DNA of 62,917 bases, counting the filler, from Pelomyxa schiedti (taxonomy: Eukaryota; Protista; Evosea), in the NCBI GenBank assembly GCA_020536535.1. It is 3 parts of 3 records of this genome, joined end to end, with 100 filler letters (N's around TTAATTAATTAA, not from the genome) between each part and the next. Parts side by side here need not be neighbours in the genome. Positions count along the whole stretch, not along the records: positions 1 to 31,198 come from JAHLWZ010001001.1; 2 more parts are not named here. One strand, 5' to 3'. Positions 13,056 through 23,041 of this stretch are shown here, one piece after another. The notes beneath the pieces were generated by a model. That model was not told the origin of the DNA and made no database searches. It was given only the letters and a program-made list of their open reading frames with translations. How positions within the stretch are numbered: position 1 is the stretch's first letter; each line of letters starts with the position of its first letter. A program made the position numbers and the translations under genes.

Positions 13056-15674
13056 CTAAACGGAACGTGAGAAATGAACACAAGGAAAATGCCCAATACC
13101 TGTTTGCTGAGTGCGAGGCAGGCCACTGTGTTGTGGTGTCTCTTGACTGGGTGATGCTAATTGTGTGTTATTGGGGGAATGGTTGGTTGTGGTGTTGCTG
13201 GTTGATGTCGTAGTGCTGCAGGATGTGGTTGTGGTAGTGGCGGAGCCGATGTCCAATCCGTCCAATCCATCCACTTCATTCGATACAGCAGCATCAATAG
13301 CCGCTGCTATGTCATCGGCGTCTACATCAAAAGCCAGGTTGTTGTATGATGTTGCTGTGCCATCAGAATTATGCGACGTGGGAAGGAGAAGCCATTCCAA
13401 GTCGGCTGGTTCTGATGCCTCCTGCGTCTCAGTTTCTGGTTGTTCCAAGTCTTGCAGCTCGCTATCATTGTCGAAAGAGATACATTGTTGGTCACTAGCA
13501 TCCAACTGTGAGCGGTTAGATGATGAATTATAAAAATAAAAAGTTCTTTTTACAAACCCCAAGAGAAAAACGGCGGGCATTTTGAATAGCGTCTAGCCAT
13601 TCCTCCATCAACGCAGCGTTCTCTGCTTGTACATCCCAAGAAGTGGTCCGCCAACTATAATGCAGAAAAGGATTACAAAACAAAAGCATAAATAGGGGAA
13701 AAGGAGAAAAAGGGAAGCGTACGTATTCAAACTAACAACTATATGTATACCCAAATCGCAGATAGGGACCACACTGACAATTTCATCCAGAAGGATTTTC
13801 CCACAAGGTGTGGGACTCTAAATGAAGAAAGACATAAGTAAAAAAAGCCTAGACAGACAGGAAGTTACTTTAGGAGATGTGAAGTTCATCAAACTATTCC
13901 CCTTTAAAACAAACCTGTTAGGTAAAGAAACTGTCAGTTAAAAGAAACAAGACAGAATCATAACCATCTTTTTTTCCAGTTTTTCCATTTACTTCCTTGC
14001 TTTTTTAGCCACCCACTTTTCGCAATAACATATCCCTGAATTTGATGAGGCTAATACAAGGCCCAACAACTTACAGCAGTTTGCCCACAAGTATTTCTAG
14101 CTTTAGCGATTTTTTCTGGGCACAAGTTAAACCGTACGTCTACTTTTTCAAAAAAATACCTTGCACACTTGCGGGACCAATAGCTGGATCAACAAAAAAG
14201 CACATGGAACCATCTCCAATATTGAAACAGGCAATTTTAGTCACCAGCTGGGTTTCTAGAACATGATTCTGATAAAAATTAAAATAATGTTATTAGTTCG
14301 CCGGACTTACTGTAACAGTGTCTGGAAGATCTAGTACTGGTGACAGATTAAAGGACACACTAATGGAGAATCTACTTGGAAAGCTGATAACAGTTAAATA
14401 TAACTTAAGATGCTTTCTAATACCGGCTATCGTCTGCAGCACCGTCAATCGCAGATTTATTCAAAAAGAGAGTGCCATGCTCAACATATCCTGTGTGGAA
14501 ATTGAATCGACATACTTGCTCTGGTCTGGCAAAGGCAATTAAGAGAGGTACTGCTGATTCTTGTTGGGAAAATGAGTGGGAGTAAGATTGCACTCACTTT
14601 CCCATGTATGGAACATGATCGATAACCACAAGAATGTCTCCTTGGACAATGGCAGCTACATCAAAAATTATAGGCGAATCGCCAGTACATTCTCTGTGGA
14701 GAGTTCGATGAAATAGCTAGAGTCAATATAAACCTTGGGGCGGAGACAAATATTGGTGTAGTAGAACTGACTTGATATATTGATAACATAGGAGCAATAC
14801 CCGCAGACATTAGTAATGTAAACTGGAGGCTATTAGTTGAGGTTATTCTTCTTGTGTATTGCATAGCAAACCTGTGGGGTACAACTCAAAGTGATTTGGG
14901 TGATTTTCAAAGCATCAGGCTTAGGCGTTTGCTTGTTATGTAACAGGCGACTTAAATAATGAACATAACGCAGCTGACTAGGTCCAGAAACACCATTCTG
15001 GGTAACTGACCTTTGTCTTGCAAAAAAGTTGAGGGCATTATCGGGTTGATCGAAAAGCCCTTAAATTGGGAAGTCAAAAGGGAGAAGCCCAGTTCCGATA
15101 CTCACCACAGAGGAGGAAAAAACTGGCTATAACTGTTCCTGTCCTCCCTTTTCCAGCCTATTTCCAGTTAATACGTGCATTTCTCTTCTGCTCCATACGA
15201 GACAGTGGACAGCTACAATATTCAGTGGATCAGCAGCAAGCCAGCTGTACATGTCCATGACGAGTTTCAAGAGAACCCAAAAGGGTGGGGCATGGTGATC
15301 AGGAAAGGAACACCACATGTACTGAACCTGAAAGAAAGTAAGGAGAGGAGAAATTCAACAACACTTGCCTGGTAAGAAAACTTAGCGTAGTCATAATCCC
15401 TACCAGAGAGGTTAAAAATCATGTAGTGCCCTTTGTGGTGGGTCTCCATCATTCCGACTACATCATCAATAAAGTTTCTGTACGTGCTTTCCACCCCCTC
15501 AGCAGGGAATGACATTGCTTTTAAGACTATTACCCAACCACAAAGCTTTGGTTTGGAAAAAAAGTTACCAATGACTCTATCAGTGATATACGTCAGATCT
15601 AGATTGTACTTTCCGTCGTCAAAGCGATTCTTGTCGCCGGAGAAGCGAGTCCTTAGTGCCGTGTAGAAGGCCAT
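13056..15674 (-). CDS. PTEN-like phosphoinositide phosphatase (phosphatase, probable C2) with a C-terminal PH domain
   Basis: 'LDLTYITDRVI|AMSFPAEG.ESTYRN', 'FPDHHAP', spliced P-loop 'HCL|AGKGRTG'. PH exons 'KSGWLKKQGSKWKNWKKRW|FVLKGNSL' near 13880-14030. 3' end approximate. Confidence 0.88.
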
Positions 15675-15930
15675 GACCCTTCGACCGTTTTTTTTCTTCA
15701 AAAAGTTTGCTTTTCTGCGCCATCAATCCATGTCATCACAAACTTCCACATAAAAACGAAGATAAGATTATTTTGGAGCTGCGTTTCGTTGTGTGTTGGG
15801 CAATACAATTCGGTATGAGGATTGGTGGGTGCCTGGGCCAAACCAAGTTGGAAGGCACGTATCTTGTCACCAGCCTTTCTCCACAATGTGGAGGTCGGGA
15901 GATAATTTGATTGCAGCATCAACAGTGAGG

Positions 15931-18900
15931 TCAGAATCTAGTTCTACTCCATCCGCGGTGCCAAACGCGGTTTCTTCGGCATTGAGCCCGCGGGGGAGGT
16001 TTTTCAGGAGTAATTGCTGGAGAGTTGTTTGGGAATCCACAGCAACCTTCTTGGTTCTTCCTTTGTATGTAATAGAAACTGGGTAATTTTAGTAAAGTGG
16101 TAGTATGCATACAGAAGGTACCTGTTGTGGTGGTCATAGCCGGGCTGCTCGAGGCTGCTGTGGTTGATGCTGCCGTTGTGCTTGGAGGAATATCTTCAGG
16201 TATCTTCTCTGCAGGAACAACGGCGGGGTATGCACACTCTGGCTGGTATTTAAGGAGAGCTTTAAATCCGGATATAGTGGATGCCCACATGCATTTGTTG
16301 CCGTTAGTATTTGTCATGCACAACGATCTGAATGTAGTTCGGCCTGGAGGTTGATTGGGTATTGGGGAGCACAGAACTTTGGTGAGAGATCCAGCAAAGA
16401 ATGCATGGATGCGACCGGCACTATCGGCGCCCCACACAATATTTGATTCTTCATCAATGCACAGGTCTTGCACAATTGGGACAAGTAAGGCTGAGGCTCC
16501 TTCCACGAGTCCAACTTCAATTTTTAAAATAAGTTCTGCTGTATTGGCATCACACACGGCAACACAGGTTCCTGCCGCACACCACATTTGCTCATTCTTT
16601 TCATGTACTTGCAAGGAAAAAACGGGGCTTCTCGCTGAGACCTTCATCTCTGTTTTGGCCTGCCATAAATGGCAATCGAATAAAACAATTGTGCCTTGGC
16701 AGCCCACCCATACCCAGCGCTTGTATTGCTTTATGCTTGACACAGGGTGAGAACTGACTACAAATTAGTGCCACAAAAGATAAAAAAGACCGATACCTGT
16801 CTAATTGGATGGTGTCTTGTAGATTTCTCTTTGTGAGATCGACAACAGCAATGCAACAATTGTCTGTTGGTGTCCCACACCACAGGTACTGCTTGTCATT
16901 GGTTGTTATAATACCAATACTGGAGATAATCCACCCATCCTGAAATATTTGTAGTGGTTGTTCAGCTATGTTGTTGGTCACTGAGAAGCTGTGCAGTAAC
17001 CCGTTGCAAGACCCGCACCATACACGATTATCGCAAAAAGCAAGTGCATATATTGCTGAGTTATGTAGTCTTACTGAAGTGAAAGTGGCTGTATTTGTTG
17101 GACTAACGGTGGTCAGTACAAGTTGCCCATCTTCACATCCAGCAAAGAGGGTATTATTCACCCACAACAGAGACCACACTGGTGTTTGTAGCTGTCCCTC
17201 ACCAACCTGCTCTTGTGAAAGAAGGCGCAGATTGCAAGCTGGGGGAGCTGCCGTTCCGGCCAATTGTAGTTTTTCCTTTATACTGCCATGGGACTTCACT
17301 GGTGTAATGTGCAACATTTGTTCCATCCGCAATACAATCTGCGTAGCTGTGAGGCGGTCATGAGGTACTCCAGACCAGCATCTTGGAAGAAGCTCCGAAA
17401 ATACTGGGGAAAAGGACTCCGGCAGTGTAGGGCGTAAGCCGTCCATGATATCAGTTTTCAGTTTTTGTTCCTTTATTTTCCCCAATGTGCAGTATTGTGG
17501 AAGACCAAGGAATTCATCATAAGGGGATACCCCAGAAGCAAGTTCATAAAATACCATAGATAAAGCATAAACATCTGAGGATTCATTGTACGATTTGGAG
17601 TGAACACTAAATACTTCTGGTGCAAAACACTGGTATTTGTCTTGGAATATGCCACCAATATCACCAATGGCTTTTTGACTAAGGCCTACAGTATATCAAT
17701 AGAGGTGTGAACATTTTTTAAGCAACCTAAATCAGATATTTTCGCATGGATCACCTCACTGGAGTCACTCAGAGAAAATATAAGAACGTTAGGGGAGCGC
17801 AAATCTGTATAGTTAAAGTAACGTAGCTTTCAGGGTAATTTAATGCTTCCTCACCTCTGTGTACAATAGGCGGAGAAAGTGAGTGAAGATATTCCAACCC
17901 TCTTGCTGTATCAAGGGCAATGAGATGCTTCTGTCTCCAATCAAGGGCCGTTCTCAGTACCAGGGAGTGCAAGTCACCAAATGAGGCAAACTTAACAGTT
18001 TTGAGTGAATACACATCAACACTTGAAAAAACCTCCATAACAAGCCCGAGTAACGGTGGGGCAGTAACACCGAGTAGTTGAATGACATATGGACAATCTA
18101 ATCCAGCCATTAGCTCCGCTTCTTTCTTAAAAGCAGAAAACCTCTCCACTTGCCCATATACATCAGTGTCCTATGTGATATGAGAAGGGAAGGTATTCCC
18201 AACTAGAACTTACAAGTTGTTTTATCGCTTTCCATGCAGTATCCTTCCCAGCCAAAGTGCATTTATACACTTCTCCAAATGTGCCTCCACCAAGTCTTCC
18301 TTGCATTACCACAGAGGAGCCAGGAATTAAGTTCAAATTAGATACAGATAAGTCCGGCGCAAGTGAATCCACCACCACATCGCATCCCCCTCGTTGACAA
18401 TAGACAACACGCTTCCCGCTGTTCAATGCCTGCGCAATATCCGAAAATAAGAAGTAAAACTGCTGGGCATCGCCTGGATGCTTTGGAACTGGACAGTGAT
18501 TGCATGCAACTTCCTTGATTATGGATGTTATAATTGGGGCATAGAAGGAATCCAAGCATGTATCTATTGCAGAAATTGCGTCACAGAAAAGGGTTGGGTG
18601 CACGAAACGTGCACATCTTGAATAAATATGGAGCTGATGTGTTGCGCCTGCCACACAGATAAATTCCACGCGTAAATGATGTAGCTGGTAGTTGCCGGTA
18701 TTAGACACACTGTTATCGCGCACAATTATGGCATTGTTCTTCCAGAACAGGTTTCCTACTGAATGGTGATCCTTCATTCCCAGAAGTCGCACAAGAACAC
18801 GACCAAATAAACCCATGGGGAGAGAATGAAAATTGTAAATCCTCCCATACTGGACTTCAGTTGAAGCAGGCACAGACGGCCATGCTGCACTTGCTTCTAG

Positions 18901-21336
18901 TGGTTCCTTTAGAGGTAGCAGATAAGGAATTAAATATCGTGATGCTATCGGTTCACTTGAGTAGCGTGAGAACATACTCAAAATTTGGCGGAAGGCTTAC
19001 TTGACCGTCTTGAGAGGGATCATTATATTGAAGTACTCCAAAAGACTGAGTAAAAATGGGTATTGCTCCTGTGGAAACTGTTTCCACATCAGTGGGAGGT
19101 GTTTAATATCAAGAATGCCATCCTTGATAAAGGAAGACTGTTTCACAGATATCACAGTAGAAAAAAGTGAGGCAAGAAATTCAGGATTTATCACGATAAT
19201 ATCTAAGGGAACGGTAAGGGAACTAGTGACTTGATGATGGATATTTAACTAAATTGCCGTGCAATGGCCGGGAAATACATTAAAGAGCCTACTTCATGGA
19301 AGAAGAGTGCAGCATTGGAAATATTTCCAGAGTCAATGCCACACTCTACGGCCATCTCACAAAATTGTGACCATTGCATAGTCTAGTGGCATTACATGGC
19401 TTTAGTATATTTGAAGTGACAAAAAGATGAAACCTGCGTTTTTTGCCGAATCAAACTGATTTTGTTATGTAACACAACCCAAGAACACTTGATCTTCTCT
19501 CGTAGAAAACGAAACTCTGTAACCACATCTACAAGGCAACTTTTGACGGCGGGAAAACCACTCCCCGATCGAGCATTCACTGGTAAACAATCGACAATTC
19601 TAAATCCTCTATTTTTGAACTGCTGCTGAATGCTTTTACACATGCTTTGTGCCTTTACTCCCACAACATCAGCATGCGTTCCGACAAGCAGAAGAGGAGG
19701 CTTGGTTGTGGGCACCAAGTTCACTATTTGAGTCAGGTAAAACTCAATGAAGGCCTCGTGCATGCGTGAAAGATTAAAAACTAATACAAAGAGTGATCGG
19801 CCTAGTTACATTAATGAATAGTCAAACGTGGATAATACATACCGGTAAGGAAAAATTGGTGAGTCTCCTGCAAGATAACCTGTCCACCAAAGTCATAAGA
19901 GCAAAACTCAACATTATTTATTGTGAATGGCGTCAAGTTCACCGATACGCCATCCGTGGATAACGGGATCTTGGTGCATGTGCCATGCAACTGATGGCAT
20001 AGACTTGTCTTTCCGACTGCAGCAGGGCCTAAGATAACCAGTTTTACCTGATTCCATCTGGTTTCTTCCCCCAGAGGAGCCTGCAGCAAGTAGTGTAACA
20101 GAGCAATTCGATCTGAGTAAATGGAGCTTGGTATATCAAGGTTTCGGTTACCACTAAGTTTTACTGTAGCACTCGGATTTTGCAAAACACGTGACAGTGT
20201 TGGCGGCAGAGTGGTTAATGCATTGTTCTCTAAGTTGATGTCAACAAGGCGGTCGCAGTACCCAATTTCATCAGGAAGTGTTAATATGCAGTTGTATGAA
20301 AGATCCAGTGTAGTTAATGCTCCCATCCTATTGATTTCGGCAGGTATCCATGAAATGTAATTGTGTGAAAAAATGATTTTGCACAAGGTATTAGACAGGT
20401 TCCTACAAAGGGCCACTGGGAAATACGGCATGTTATTTTTGCTGAGATTCACACATGTTAGACCAGAAAGTTCCCCAGTGCCAAAATGTTTTGGCAAGGT
20501 AGTTAATCCAACTTCATTTAGGATATACTCTCCAGTGGATTTTGCTTTTTCCAGTGCCGCCAATTTGAGAGCTTCATCTTTTGGCCAGTAGAGTTCCCAT
20601 AAGAACTTTGCAGCGTTATTATAAAACTTCTTCTTTTCTGGTTGACGAGGTATGAGGTCGGGTGGGACAACGGGGACTGGCGCAGAGTCCACTTTTAATC
20701 TTGTTTCCATGGAGCACGCCATCTCAAAGAAGATGTGTTCAATGTTTGTGTTACATTTAGCACTGGCCTCAAAGAAAGAGAAGTCCCAGCCCAAGCACAA
20801 CTCTCTTGCCTGCTCGACGGAAATAGCACGTTGATCTTCCAGATCGCACTTTGTCCCCACGCAACAGCCACTTGCATCTTCACAATACGAATCCATTGTG
20901 TGTCTCCAGCGTGTCAAATTTGTGAAAGACTCTGTGTCCGTGATATCATACACAAAGAAGACTCCTTGGGTCCCTCGGAATTGTCTTCAGTAGGGAAGTC
21001 AACAGGTAAGTTAAACAGAGTTGATAAACAAACGCGGCAGTGGGAGTTCGAAAGCGATCGTTCAGAAGAAGGTCCCAGATCTGGAGCACGATCCGCTTCC
21101 CGCGTACAATCAGTGGAGAAGACAATTTGAACGAAGCATCTTCAGTCGGAGCACTCGTATCAGTGAACGTACCGTCTATGTACCTATGAATCAGGGCTGT
21201 CTGGAGAAGGAATCAGTACATTAAAACCATACTTTGCAATCGAGAGTACCTTGCCCACCGACCTGTCACCAAGCAGAATTACTTTGAACAAGTGGTCAAA
21301 TGGTTCTTCGCCAACAAGACTGCGTTGCATCGTCAT
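15931..21336 (-). CDS. Roco/LRRK-like kinase: Rab-like GTPase, LRR, ROC, COR, TKL kinase, WD40-like propeller
   Basis: Rab: 'FKVILLGDRSVGK|T', 'VYDITD.ESF', 'VGTKCD', 'FEASAK'. LRRs: 'LDLSYN', 'INLENN'. ROC: 'VKLVILGPAAVGKTSL..STDGV..YDFGGQ', 'LVGTHAD'. COR: 'LPMGLFGRVLVRL'. Kinase: 'LGGGTFGEVYK', 'HR|DLRSPN', 'FAPE'. WD-like repeats at 16100-17250. 3' end approximate. Confidence 0.9.
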
Positions 21337-21531: not shown

Positions 21532-23041
21532 ATGCGGCGATACGATGGCGCCAGTTTCGGGGTGCTGGGTGTGGAGCTAGCCATCGTGCAGGTGCCACTC
21601 GCAGTCTTCACCGCGCTCATGTATGCCAAGGAGACCGGCGCTGTGACGTGGACGTGGTGGGCAATCTTCGCGCCGATGCTGCTCATTGCACTCTTGTTTG
21701 CGCTCGCTGGCACACAGAGGACGAGTGCCCCGCACACTGTGAGAGTCGCTTGTGTCCTTGGCGTCGTTTGCTTTGCTGCTACTATTCTTATGATCATTTT
21801 CAAGTGTGTTCTCATTCGTCTAGAAATTAATTATTTCCCTCGTCCATCGGCTATGTCTGTGGCTAACTCGTTATTTTTCTTTTCTTTTCTTTTCTTTTCT
21901 TTTCTTTTCTTTTCTTTTCTTTTCTTTTCTTTTCTTTTCTTTTCTTTTCTTTTGATTTTTTTTGTTTTATCAAGACTAGAGTACAACTCTGCTGTTCTAG
22001 AAAACTTGGTGATTCTATACATTCCAATTTGGGCTTTTCCATTGGTCACTATCCAAGCTTCATTGTACAAGTTTAAAGAAGTAATACTAGGCAGGGCTTG
22101 ACAGCAATTGGAATTTACTCCATATTTCGTGGAAGACAGCAAACGCGTCATGTTCTCCCAACTGGATCCCACAGTCAATTTGACATCTGGAGGAATACTG
22201 AGTATCACACCATTGGGGTAGGATTGATTTGCCTTGGTGTTCTTCTTGGTTTAATAGTTTCCCTAATATTTCTGAAAGAAACGGGGCTCCTTAATGCTTC
22301 ATGGTGGTGTACTTTTTCTTTCTTTAAAACAAAAATTAATAACTCAAACTTGTACCTTCACATTCTCACATCCATTTCCCCATTTAGGACTATTATTTTC
22401 GTGCCATGGTTAGTTTCTTATAAAGTACTGTAACTGTGTTTTTATTGCCCCCAGGTGGATTCTGGATTCCTTTTCGTTTATTGTTGGTGGATTCTTGATT
22501 CTTTTTACTCTTGGTGCACCCTCCGATGCTTTATTTCCGGTCCGATCATTTGTCCTCTCAGTCTTCGATACTCACCGATAGATAGATCTATCAATTGTTG
22601 AACTTTCTCGCAATTCTGCTTGCTTGCATGCTATTCGAGATTTTTTTAGCCATTCAGTTGGATGGTGATCGTAGCTTGGCGTATTACTCACCATACATTG
22701 CCGCCCTGGTAGCAGAATTCCTATTTGCCACATGTGGTATTGGAATGCTTATTGGCAAGAATCGTAGGAAGAGTTTATTCAAGAGGAGAAAGCCACTCAA
22801 ACCTGCCAAGTCACACAAACAACAGCACCACGAATACGACACCCTCCCACAAGAATCACAACCCCACAACCCCCAAAACATTTCTGTGCAAGTAAGTGAC
22901 ACCACCAGGTCTGCTTCAGCCACTACTACTGCTCCTACAACAAACACAACCACAGGCTTACCAGCCGTCACTGTTTTACCTAGCAATACTACCGCTGTTT
23001 CAGGAAGTACACCTGACAGCAACCCCTCATCAAGTTTGTGA
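21532..23041 (+). CDS. Multi-pass membrane protein, TMEM185/Fragile-X-F-associated-like
   Basis: Repeated hydrophobic segments with 'TWTWWAIFAP', 'LYIPIW', 'NASWW|TIIFVP|W' and 'FEIFLAIQLDG'. Confidence 0.6.
21876..21952. repeat. (TTTTC)n microsatellite in an intron
   Basis: About 15 tandem TTTTC units are visible directly. Confidence 0.95.

Follow-up and report, generated by a model that had tools for sequence, protein, structure and literature searches.

A predicted Rab1-Roco kinase fusion gene conserved in two Pelomyxa schiedti paralogs and a metagenomic homolog

Pelomyxa schiedti is an anaerobic amoeba of the Archamoebae, a group within Amoebozoa. A gene on the minus strand of a 62,917-nucleotide stretch of its genome (assembly GCA_020536535.1; hereafter the window) raises the question of whether a Rab GTPase and a Roco kinase can be joined in one polypeptide and, if so, what the Rab part might still do. 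The window consists of three parts joined by N filler, wherein positions 1-31,198 correspond to JAHLWZ010001001.1, and the coding region lies at 15867..21336. An initial annotation described the gene as an LRRK-type Roco kinase with its own Rab fused to the N-terminus, and thus with two G domains in one chain ahead of COR, kinase and propeller regions. Our comparisons of exons, a paralog and a metagenomic homolog agree with this description of the chain. They show one real, intact gene predicted to encode a Rab1-derived G domain fused ahead of a complete Roco kinase.

The fusion is most directly visible in a 380-amino-acid open reading frame (ORF) at 19811-20953 on the minus strand. As initially reported, this ORF carries the C-terminal half of the Rab fold, the leucine-rich repeats (LRRs) and the Roc P-loop in a single frame without interruption. 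All searches and structure predictions used either single exons or the public partial model P0001 (KAH3743320.1) as the query. Pfam matches in the ORF include Ras at residues 1-82 (profile positions 78-160 of 162, E = 7.8e-22), LRR_8 at 192-246 and Roc at 304-371 (E = 3.5e-10). Farther 3' on the same strand are matches to COR-A, COR-B and Pkinase, as well as weak matches to beta-propeller families.

The complete gene model includes 12 exons and encodes 1655 amino acids. Introns were accepted when they had GT-AG boundaries, kept the reading frame, and gave an identical junction peptide in the window gene (copy A) and its paralog (copy B). These introns are 41-51 nucleotides long. The start codon at 21336 is the first ATG and is the same as that of the public model. 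The initial annotation placed the 3' end of the gene at 15931, which is the stop of the unspliced frame. A last intron (16121 to 16078) that is conserved in the paralog instead opens onto a 69-amino-acid final exon, such that the stop codon is located at 15869-15867 and the protein ends with ...VEKGW. The public model is named "GTP-binding protein yptV1" and is only 629 amino acids long. Its first five exons match our model, but it splices incorrectly at the end of exon 5. This error ends the public model early, and therefore the COR, kinase, propeller and ubiquitin-like parts are missing from it.

Is this arrangement found at more than one locus? A paralog in the same genome (G000:C562, loci L011 and L012) has the same 12-exon structure and is 76% identical overall. 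All 11 GT-AG junctions are kept in this copy, and the Rab C-half again shares one exon, free of stop codons, with the LRRs and the Roc P-loop. A third homolog (L025) is carried by a 49.9-kb ENA metagenome contig (ERZ21831265), which was reached through a 146-amino-acid phmmer fragment (P0072). Exon-sized gene calls on this contig match Ras, LRR/Arf, COR-A/COR-B and Pkinase in a row, and tblastn alignment is colinear with the window gene model over residues 16-1545. The P. schiedti assembly contains no match to the 6.4 kb of DNA around the L025 gene, and so the contig most likely comes from another organism. Because all 11 junctions are kept in the paralog and L025 is colinear, the fusion is beyond chance. 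Furthermore, the same domain order in both homologs indicates that it is not an accident at one locus. Judged by sequence, these genes constitute a small conserved family with two paralogs in P. schiedti and one homolog in another genome. Three shared derived characters, namely a TKxD motif, loss of the DxxGQ motif and a homologous linker, are common to all three members and argue for one ancestral fusion. Two intron positions are also common to both paralogs.

To which family does the N-terminal G domain belong? When residues 1-185 were compared with PDB sequences by using phmmer, the best 60 matches were all Rabs, including Rab8A (E = 1.4e-39) and Rab1A (E = 3.7e-38), and the whole G domain was aligned. 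The C-half of the copy B domain, which is its better-preserved part, matches Rab1A/B in the PDB at about 1e-30 to 1e-31 and Ypt1 at 3e-25, whereas the next family, Rab10, reaches 4e-22. A word-index protein search with P0001:1-185 returned almost only Rab3D and is uninformative on subfamily. In a maximum-likelihood tree, for which the Pelomyxa Rab genes were stitched approximately from ungapped tblastn matches, the three fused domains fall inside a Rab1-like clade (support 87/96), apart from Rab3 references and from a Rab8-like Pelomyxa gene. The Roc domains of the gene are placed on a distant branch (100/100). The approximately unbiased (AU) test rejects neither monophyly of the three fused Rab domains (p = 0.139) nor placement of copy B with stand-alone Rab1 genes of the C521 type (p = 0.377). 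The N-terminal domain is a Rab of the Rab1 clade rather than a second Roc domain, consistent with the Rab identity that was initially claimed.

Sequence motifs suggest that this Rab is not an ordinary one. The canonical switch II sequence WDTAGQERFRT is WDLLLNDRFRT in the window gene, WDTVSKERF-TT in copy B and WDTPPLQRFRT in L025. Thus, the gamma-phosphate-sensing Gly and the catalytic Gln of the DxxGQ motif are gone from all three homologs, whose corresponding residues are DLLLN, DTVSK and DTPPL. In the window gene, these changes follow D72 and place L75 at the position of Gly and N76 at the position of Gln. In contrast, the stand-alone Rab1 genes of Pelomyxa retain WDTAGQERF and NKxD. The GxxxxGK[ST], TKxD and SAK motifs are retained in all three fused domains, and the first of these is GDRSVGKT in the window gene. 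The G4 motif is TKCD in each homolog, wherein Thr replaces Asn. A TKxD motif is found in functional Rac-type GTPases too. The switch-I Thr is retained in copy A and L025. The Thr equivalent to the site phosphorylated by LRRK2 (in RFRT; T81, aligned with T72 of Rab8A) is retained in two of the three homologs, and copy B has RF-TT. The chain runs on into the linker and LRRs in the same ORF, and so there is no C-terminal cysteine tail for prenylation.

Because DxxGQ is lost in all three homologs and no prenylation tail is present, and because the P-loop, TKxD and SAK motifs are kept, the Rab-like domain is probably able to bind nucleotide yet switch-dead, such that it would neither cycle nor hydrolyze GTP like a Rab. 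The proposal of a fused Rab therefore stands with regard to identity, but not with regard to an ordinary working GTPase.

A further C521-type, Rab1-like gene, whose motifs are degenerate, is present elsewhere in the assembly (L021, G000:C926:22154-25330, minus strand, about 1504-2225). Its P-loop is EGDTGKS, its switch II is W-TTSVR with the same three-residue gap as in copy B, and no linker or LRRs follow. It may represent a pseudo-Rab that stands by itself or, alternatively, a pseudogene akin to the fused domain.

Selection acting on the Rab part can be estimated by comparing the paralogs. This part is 43% identical between the two copies, versus about 80% in other domains. Its proportions of non-synonymous (pN) and synonymous (pS) differences are 0.36 and 0.82, respectively. 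Since non-synonymous change is well under synonymous change, the Rab domain appears to be under weaker but real constraint. Elsewhere, the ratio of non-synonymous to synonymous substitution rates (dN/dS) is 0.07-0.11 for the remaining folded domains, and it reaches 0.21 for the linker and 0.40 for a short segment rich in Ser and Thr. At residues that are identical between the paralogs, four-fold sites differ at 22 of 28 positions in the Rab part and at 271 of 524 positions in the remainder of the gene. Given this higher synonymous divergence, the Rab part might predate the rest of the duplication, although with 28 sites it is a lead only. Such a pattern could have arisen if the Roco part had undergone partial gene conversion, or through exchange with a Rab1 paralog.

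From N- to C-terminus, the protein is predicted to contain the Rab-like G domain, a linker, LRRs, Roc, COR-A and COR-B, a tyrosine kinase-like (TKL) kinase domain, a beta-propeller, a spacer rich in Ser and Thr, and a ubiquitin-fold tail, all encoded on the minus strand. Exon 1 (21250..21336) carries the N-terminus and the Rab-like P-loop (GDRSVGK). Exon 2 (21034..21200) carries switch I, the interswitch and the degenerate switch II (WDLLLNDRFRT), as supported by alignment to Rab8A and by a Pfam Ras match with this exon alone (E = 9.4e-5). Exon 3 (19843..20984) encodes the Rab C-half, including TKCD (129-132) and SAK (159-161), followed by the linker, the LRRs, the Roc P-loop and DFGGQ. The Rab1-derived G domain thus covers residues 1-182 (20693..21336) and has two internal introns. 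The linker (residues 183-240; 20519..20692) is 69% identical to that of the paralog, with a dN/dS of about 0.2, and is discernible in L025.

The remainder of the chain has the composition of a Roco kinase. The LRRs (residues 241-385; 20084..20518) match Pfam LRR_8, LRR_1 and LRR_4, and the LRR_8 match upstream of Roc scores 33.1 bits. The Roc G domain (residues 386-570; 19488..20083) spans intron 3 and scores 40.6 bits against a cut-off of 27. Its motifs GPAAVGKT (404), DFGGQ (449) and THAD (507) are intact. COR-A and COR-B occupy residues 571-905 (18340..19487; exons 4-7). COR-A is matched on two exons (E = 6.8e-6 and 0.004; 26.5 and 17.5 bits, cut-off 35.3) and COR-B on one (E = 1e-4; 22.7 bits, cut-off 27). 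Each piece falls under its gathering score because introns split the COR domain. These matches are in the correct position and order, directly C-terminal of Roc, and the L025 homolog has an uninterrupted 501-amino-acid ORF (called as a 496-amino-acid gene product) with a precomputed COR-A match. A sequence search of the PDB with COR exon 7 gave no match.

The protein kinase domain (residues ~915-1197; 17330..18312; exons 7-10) matches Pfam Pkinase/PK_Tyr_Ser-Thr on exons 8 and 10. Recognizable kinase motifs are GGGTFGEV (922), HRD (1051), DLG (1077) and APE (1100). The Roc domain, with GxxxxGKT, DFGGQ and THAD, and the kinase, with its G-loop, Lys, HRD, D[LF]G and APE, both look active as judged by these residues. 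The best PDB match of the kinase is that of Dictyostelium Roco4 (E = 1e-13), followed by TAK1 and ASK1. No ARM or Ank match to Pfam was found in any exon, and the Rab-like domain begins 12 residues past the start codon. Likewise, no Pfam match to myotubularin or PH-GRAM was observed, and the N-terminus is taken by the Rab-like domain. The LRRK-type label initially given to the gene fits the LRR-Roc-COR-kinase-propeller order. However, ARM and ANK regions are missing, the kinase is closer to Roco4 than to LRRK2, and the protein is not an LRRK2 ortholog.

The beta-propeller region (WD40-like; residues ~1236-1555; 16213..17215; exons 10-11) gives only weak Pfam propeller matches (E = 0.002-0.06) and a repeated match to the designed propellers Ika8 and Ika4. 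Exon 12 encodes a C-terminal domain (residues 1587-1655; 15870..16076) that AlphaFold2 predicts to form a ubiquitin-like beta-grasp, with a predicted local distance difference test score (pLDDT) of 86.4. In Foldseek, the best matches to this model are UFM1 and ubiquitin (template modeling (TM) scores of 0.7-0.78, E = 2e-3), and there is a weak Pfam match to TUG-UBL1. The tail is 77% identical in the paralog, and a search for the corresponding exon in L025 did not find it. We know of no Roco protein with a ubiquitin-like tail.

Several known systems offer comparisons that bear on function. Dictyostelium discoideum Roco4 is also amoebozoan. Its LRR, Roc, COR, TKL kinase and C-terminal propeller follow one another as they do in the Pelomyxa protein, with whose kinase it shares an HRDLRSPN-type catalytic loop. 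However, to our knowledge Roco4 has neither a G domain ahead of its LRRs nor a ubiquitin-fold tail. Proteins such as the Rnd family and RhoH are pseudoGTPases that keep nucleotide-binding motifs, lack catalytic or switch residues, and function as constitutive modules. These are stand-alone Rho-family proteins, whereas the Pelomyxa domain is derived from Rab1 and embedded in a kinase.

A functional parallel involves Dictyostelium Roco2 (QkgA). Pull-downs with GTP-locked Rab1A recover Roco2, whose kinase activity is increased by this form and decreased by dominant-negative Rab1A (Kicka et al. 2011, PMC3128523). Roco2 without residues 2-424, which include the N-terminal LRR segment, is constitutively active and independent of Rab1A (PMC3128523). 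As in the Pelomyxa protein, a Rab1-type GTPase is coupled to an amoebozoan LRR-Roc-COR-kinase, and in Roco2 this regulation is mediated by the N-terminal LRR segment, which is autoinhibitory. Unlike the Pelomyxa domain, which is covalently fused and has lost DxxGQ, Rab1A is separate, canonical, cycling and prenylated, and it acts in trans. Animal LRRK2 is recruited and activated by Rabs that bind to its N-terminal part, and it phosphorylates Rab8A, Rab10, Rab1 and others at the switch-II Thr (PMC6337361). Human LRRK2 shares the LRR-Roc-COR-kinase-WD40 core, and the Pelomyxa protein has the Thr equivalent to its Rab site. However, where the Pelomyxa protein has a fused Rab, LRRK2 has ARM and ANK domains, and the Rabs that act on it do so in trans, at membranes. 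Another precedent is provided by proteins termed inactive myotubularin-LRR-Roco-kinase (IMLRK), which include Dictyostelium Pats1 and the products of nine Entamoeba genes (PMC2927912). In these proteins of the same supergroup, including those from another archamoeba, a catalytically dead membrane-traffic enzyme is likewise N-terminal to LRR-Roc-COR-kinase. Their fused module is a myotubularin phosphatase with PH-GRAM, rather than the small GTPase of the Pelomyxa protein.

We favor, with moderate confidence, a model in which this intact and conserved Rab1-Roco fusion carries a Rab module that binds nucleotide, is switch-dead and acts in cis. The Rab-like domain would bind a guanine nucleotide without GTP hydrolysis or normal switching, and might supply the chain with a permanent Rab1 module for regulating or targeting the kinase, while Roc would remain the true switch of the protein. 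We read the domain as a Rab1 input in cis because Rab1A regulates Roco2 in trans and because the Rab1-derived domain lies ahead of the LRRs. The hard-wired functional module that was initially proposed is plausible. Intramolecular phosphorylation of T81 is a possible added layer. More speculatively, the C-terminal beta-grasp might pair in cis with one or other G domain, since the beta-grasp is the fold of Ras-binding domains. A broader possibility, which we put forward only tentatively, is that the protein is a natural tethered Rab-Roco complex. The Rab1-derived pseudoGTPase would then serve a Roco4/LRRK2-type kinase as its activator, address tag or intramolecular substrate, and an ancient general partnership between Rabs and Roco proteins would have been fixed in Archamoebae by fusion. 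If true, Rab1-Roco regulation in Dictyostelium and the Rab-LRRK2 axis of animals would reflect one ancient partnership.

Some observations weigh against the favored model. Switch I is shortened in copy B and the YYRGA segment is absent from L025, and therefore a shared effector-binding surface is doubtful. The fourfold faster protein-level evolution of the Rab domain could mean relaxed constraint, and we infer nucleotide binding from motifs only. In addition, a complex prediction for the Rab part (1-185) against LRR-Roc-partial COR (186-629) of P0001 gave a score of 0.06, which speaks neither way on binding. Copy B (1666 amino acids), although strongly conserved (dN/dS about 0.1), also has a single in-frame TGA at codon 562, with the rest of the gene intact. 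This TGA is located at L012:3515 (G000:C562:37514), where copy A encodes Arg (FLREKIK). It could mark the copy as a pseudogene of very recent origin, be allelic, or stem from a mistake in assembly or in single-cell amplification.

How do other explanations fare with the same evidence? A fully working Rab that cycles between GDP and GTP, and thereby wires a classical switch to the kinase, is implicit in the initial annotation but improbable in our estimation. Its P-loop, G4 and G5 motifs are intact, its similarity to the Rab fold is high (E = 1e-39), and copy A and L025 keep the switch-I Thr. However, the Gly and Gln of DxxGQ that stand-alone Pelomyxa Rab1 genes retain are missing from every fused domain, L025 lacks the YYRGA segment, and the internal position leaves the domain without a C-terminal Cys tail with which to cycle on membranes. 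In another reading, the domain is mainly an intramolecular substrate or pseudosubstrate, whose Thr is phosphorylated by the kinase or occupies it. In its favor, RFRT is retained in copy A (T81) and L025 despite the ruined DxxGQ alongside, copy B keeps RF-TT, and the corresponding switch-II Thr of Rabs is a target of LRRK2 (PMC6337361). Nevertheless, this retention may be plain ancestry, and the Pelomyxa kinase is nearer to Roco4 than to LRRK2. We know of no Roco4-type kinase that targets Rabs, and overall we regard this explanation as unlikely.

It is also conceivable that the Rab-like part has lost its function and is decaying as a relic, or that the fusion is an annotation or assembly artifact of two adjacent genes. 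The strong divergence of the Rab part in both its amino acids and its four-fold sites, the degenerate switch motifs, and a short public model named as a small GTPase would all be expected in such cases. Against these readings, a stop-free ORF runs from the Rab C-half through the LRRs into the Roc P-loop in both paralogs, and the domain order is the same in the different genome represented by L025. In addition, nucleotide-binding motifs have survived in three homologs whose synonymous sites are saturated, and the linker is under purifying selection. These readings therefore seem very unlikely to us, and the cis-acting, switch-dead module remains the explanation we prefer.

The initial annotation mentioned no characterized Roco protein with this architecture, and our searches of sequences and literature likewise yielded no description of one. 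An exhaustive phmmer search of 1.84 billion representatives, among which eukaryotic proteomes are thinly represented, gave 33851 matches. Among the best 150 of these, which were inspected, a Rab precedes LRR-Roc only in the gene's own model, and elsewhere the Rab query aligns to Roc. No other Rab+LRR+Roc protein was found in a protein search with P0001 region 1-230 among candidates of 346-1100 amino acids. An ESM Atlas feature search with P0001 gave ordinary Roc/LRR clusters only, and a JGI metagenome scan with an LRR-Roc alignment gave no relative. Reviews and surveys of Roco architectures list Ank, LRR, WD40, cNB, DEP, GEF, GRAM, Death, PTP/myotubularin and RhoGEF/GAP as accessory domains, with no Rab among them, and full-text literature searches for Rab-Roco fusions found none. 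Thus, we consider the architecture not found described, which is short of proven unique. The initial suggestion that Roco-Rab coupling exists outside animals holds as well, but this conclusion is not new. Coupling of Rab1A-GTP to Roco2 is already published for Dictyostelium (PMC3128523), and the fusion is independent genomic support for it.

A central question for LRRK2, and for Parkinson's disease, is the way in which Roco kinases are engaged and activated by Rabs, and the complexes involved are transient, membrane-bound and hard to study. A single-chain Rab-Roco protein provides Rosetta-stone evidence for a functional partnership beyond animals and Dictyostelium, and points to Rab1-type G domains as the Roco partner in Amoebozoa. 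It might also serve as a structural model, since it offers a compact, stoichiometric construct for work on contacts between a Rab and the LRR, Roc and kinase domains. With this protein, a small GTPase joins the accessory domains of Roco proteins. It also appears to illustrate the conversion of a Rab into a switch-dead module. The public "yptV1" annotation conceals all of these features.

A PTEN-like phosphoinositide phosphatase gene starts at window positions 15267-15701 on the minus strand, about 170 nucleotides downstream of the Roco stop codon. Its exon matches residues 27-79 of human PTEN in the PDB (E = 1.3e-12), as well as TPTE2 and voltage-sensor phosphatases, and has no Pfam match. We considered this sequence as a possible extension of the same protein and rejected it, given the conserved stop codon in both paralogs and the lack of PTEN near the paralog. 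The match also begins at the natural N-terminus of PTEN, and we therefore judge the PTEN-like gene to be separate. On the other side of the Roco gene, about 500 nucleotides upstream of the start codon, there is an (AAAGA)n-type microsatellite at window positions 21830-21900, which, when translated in spurious ORFs of either strand, reads as repeats of KEKKR or FLFFS.

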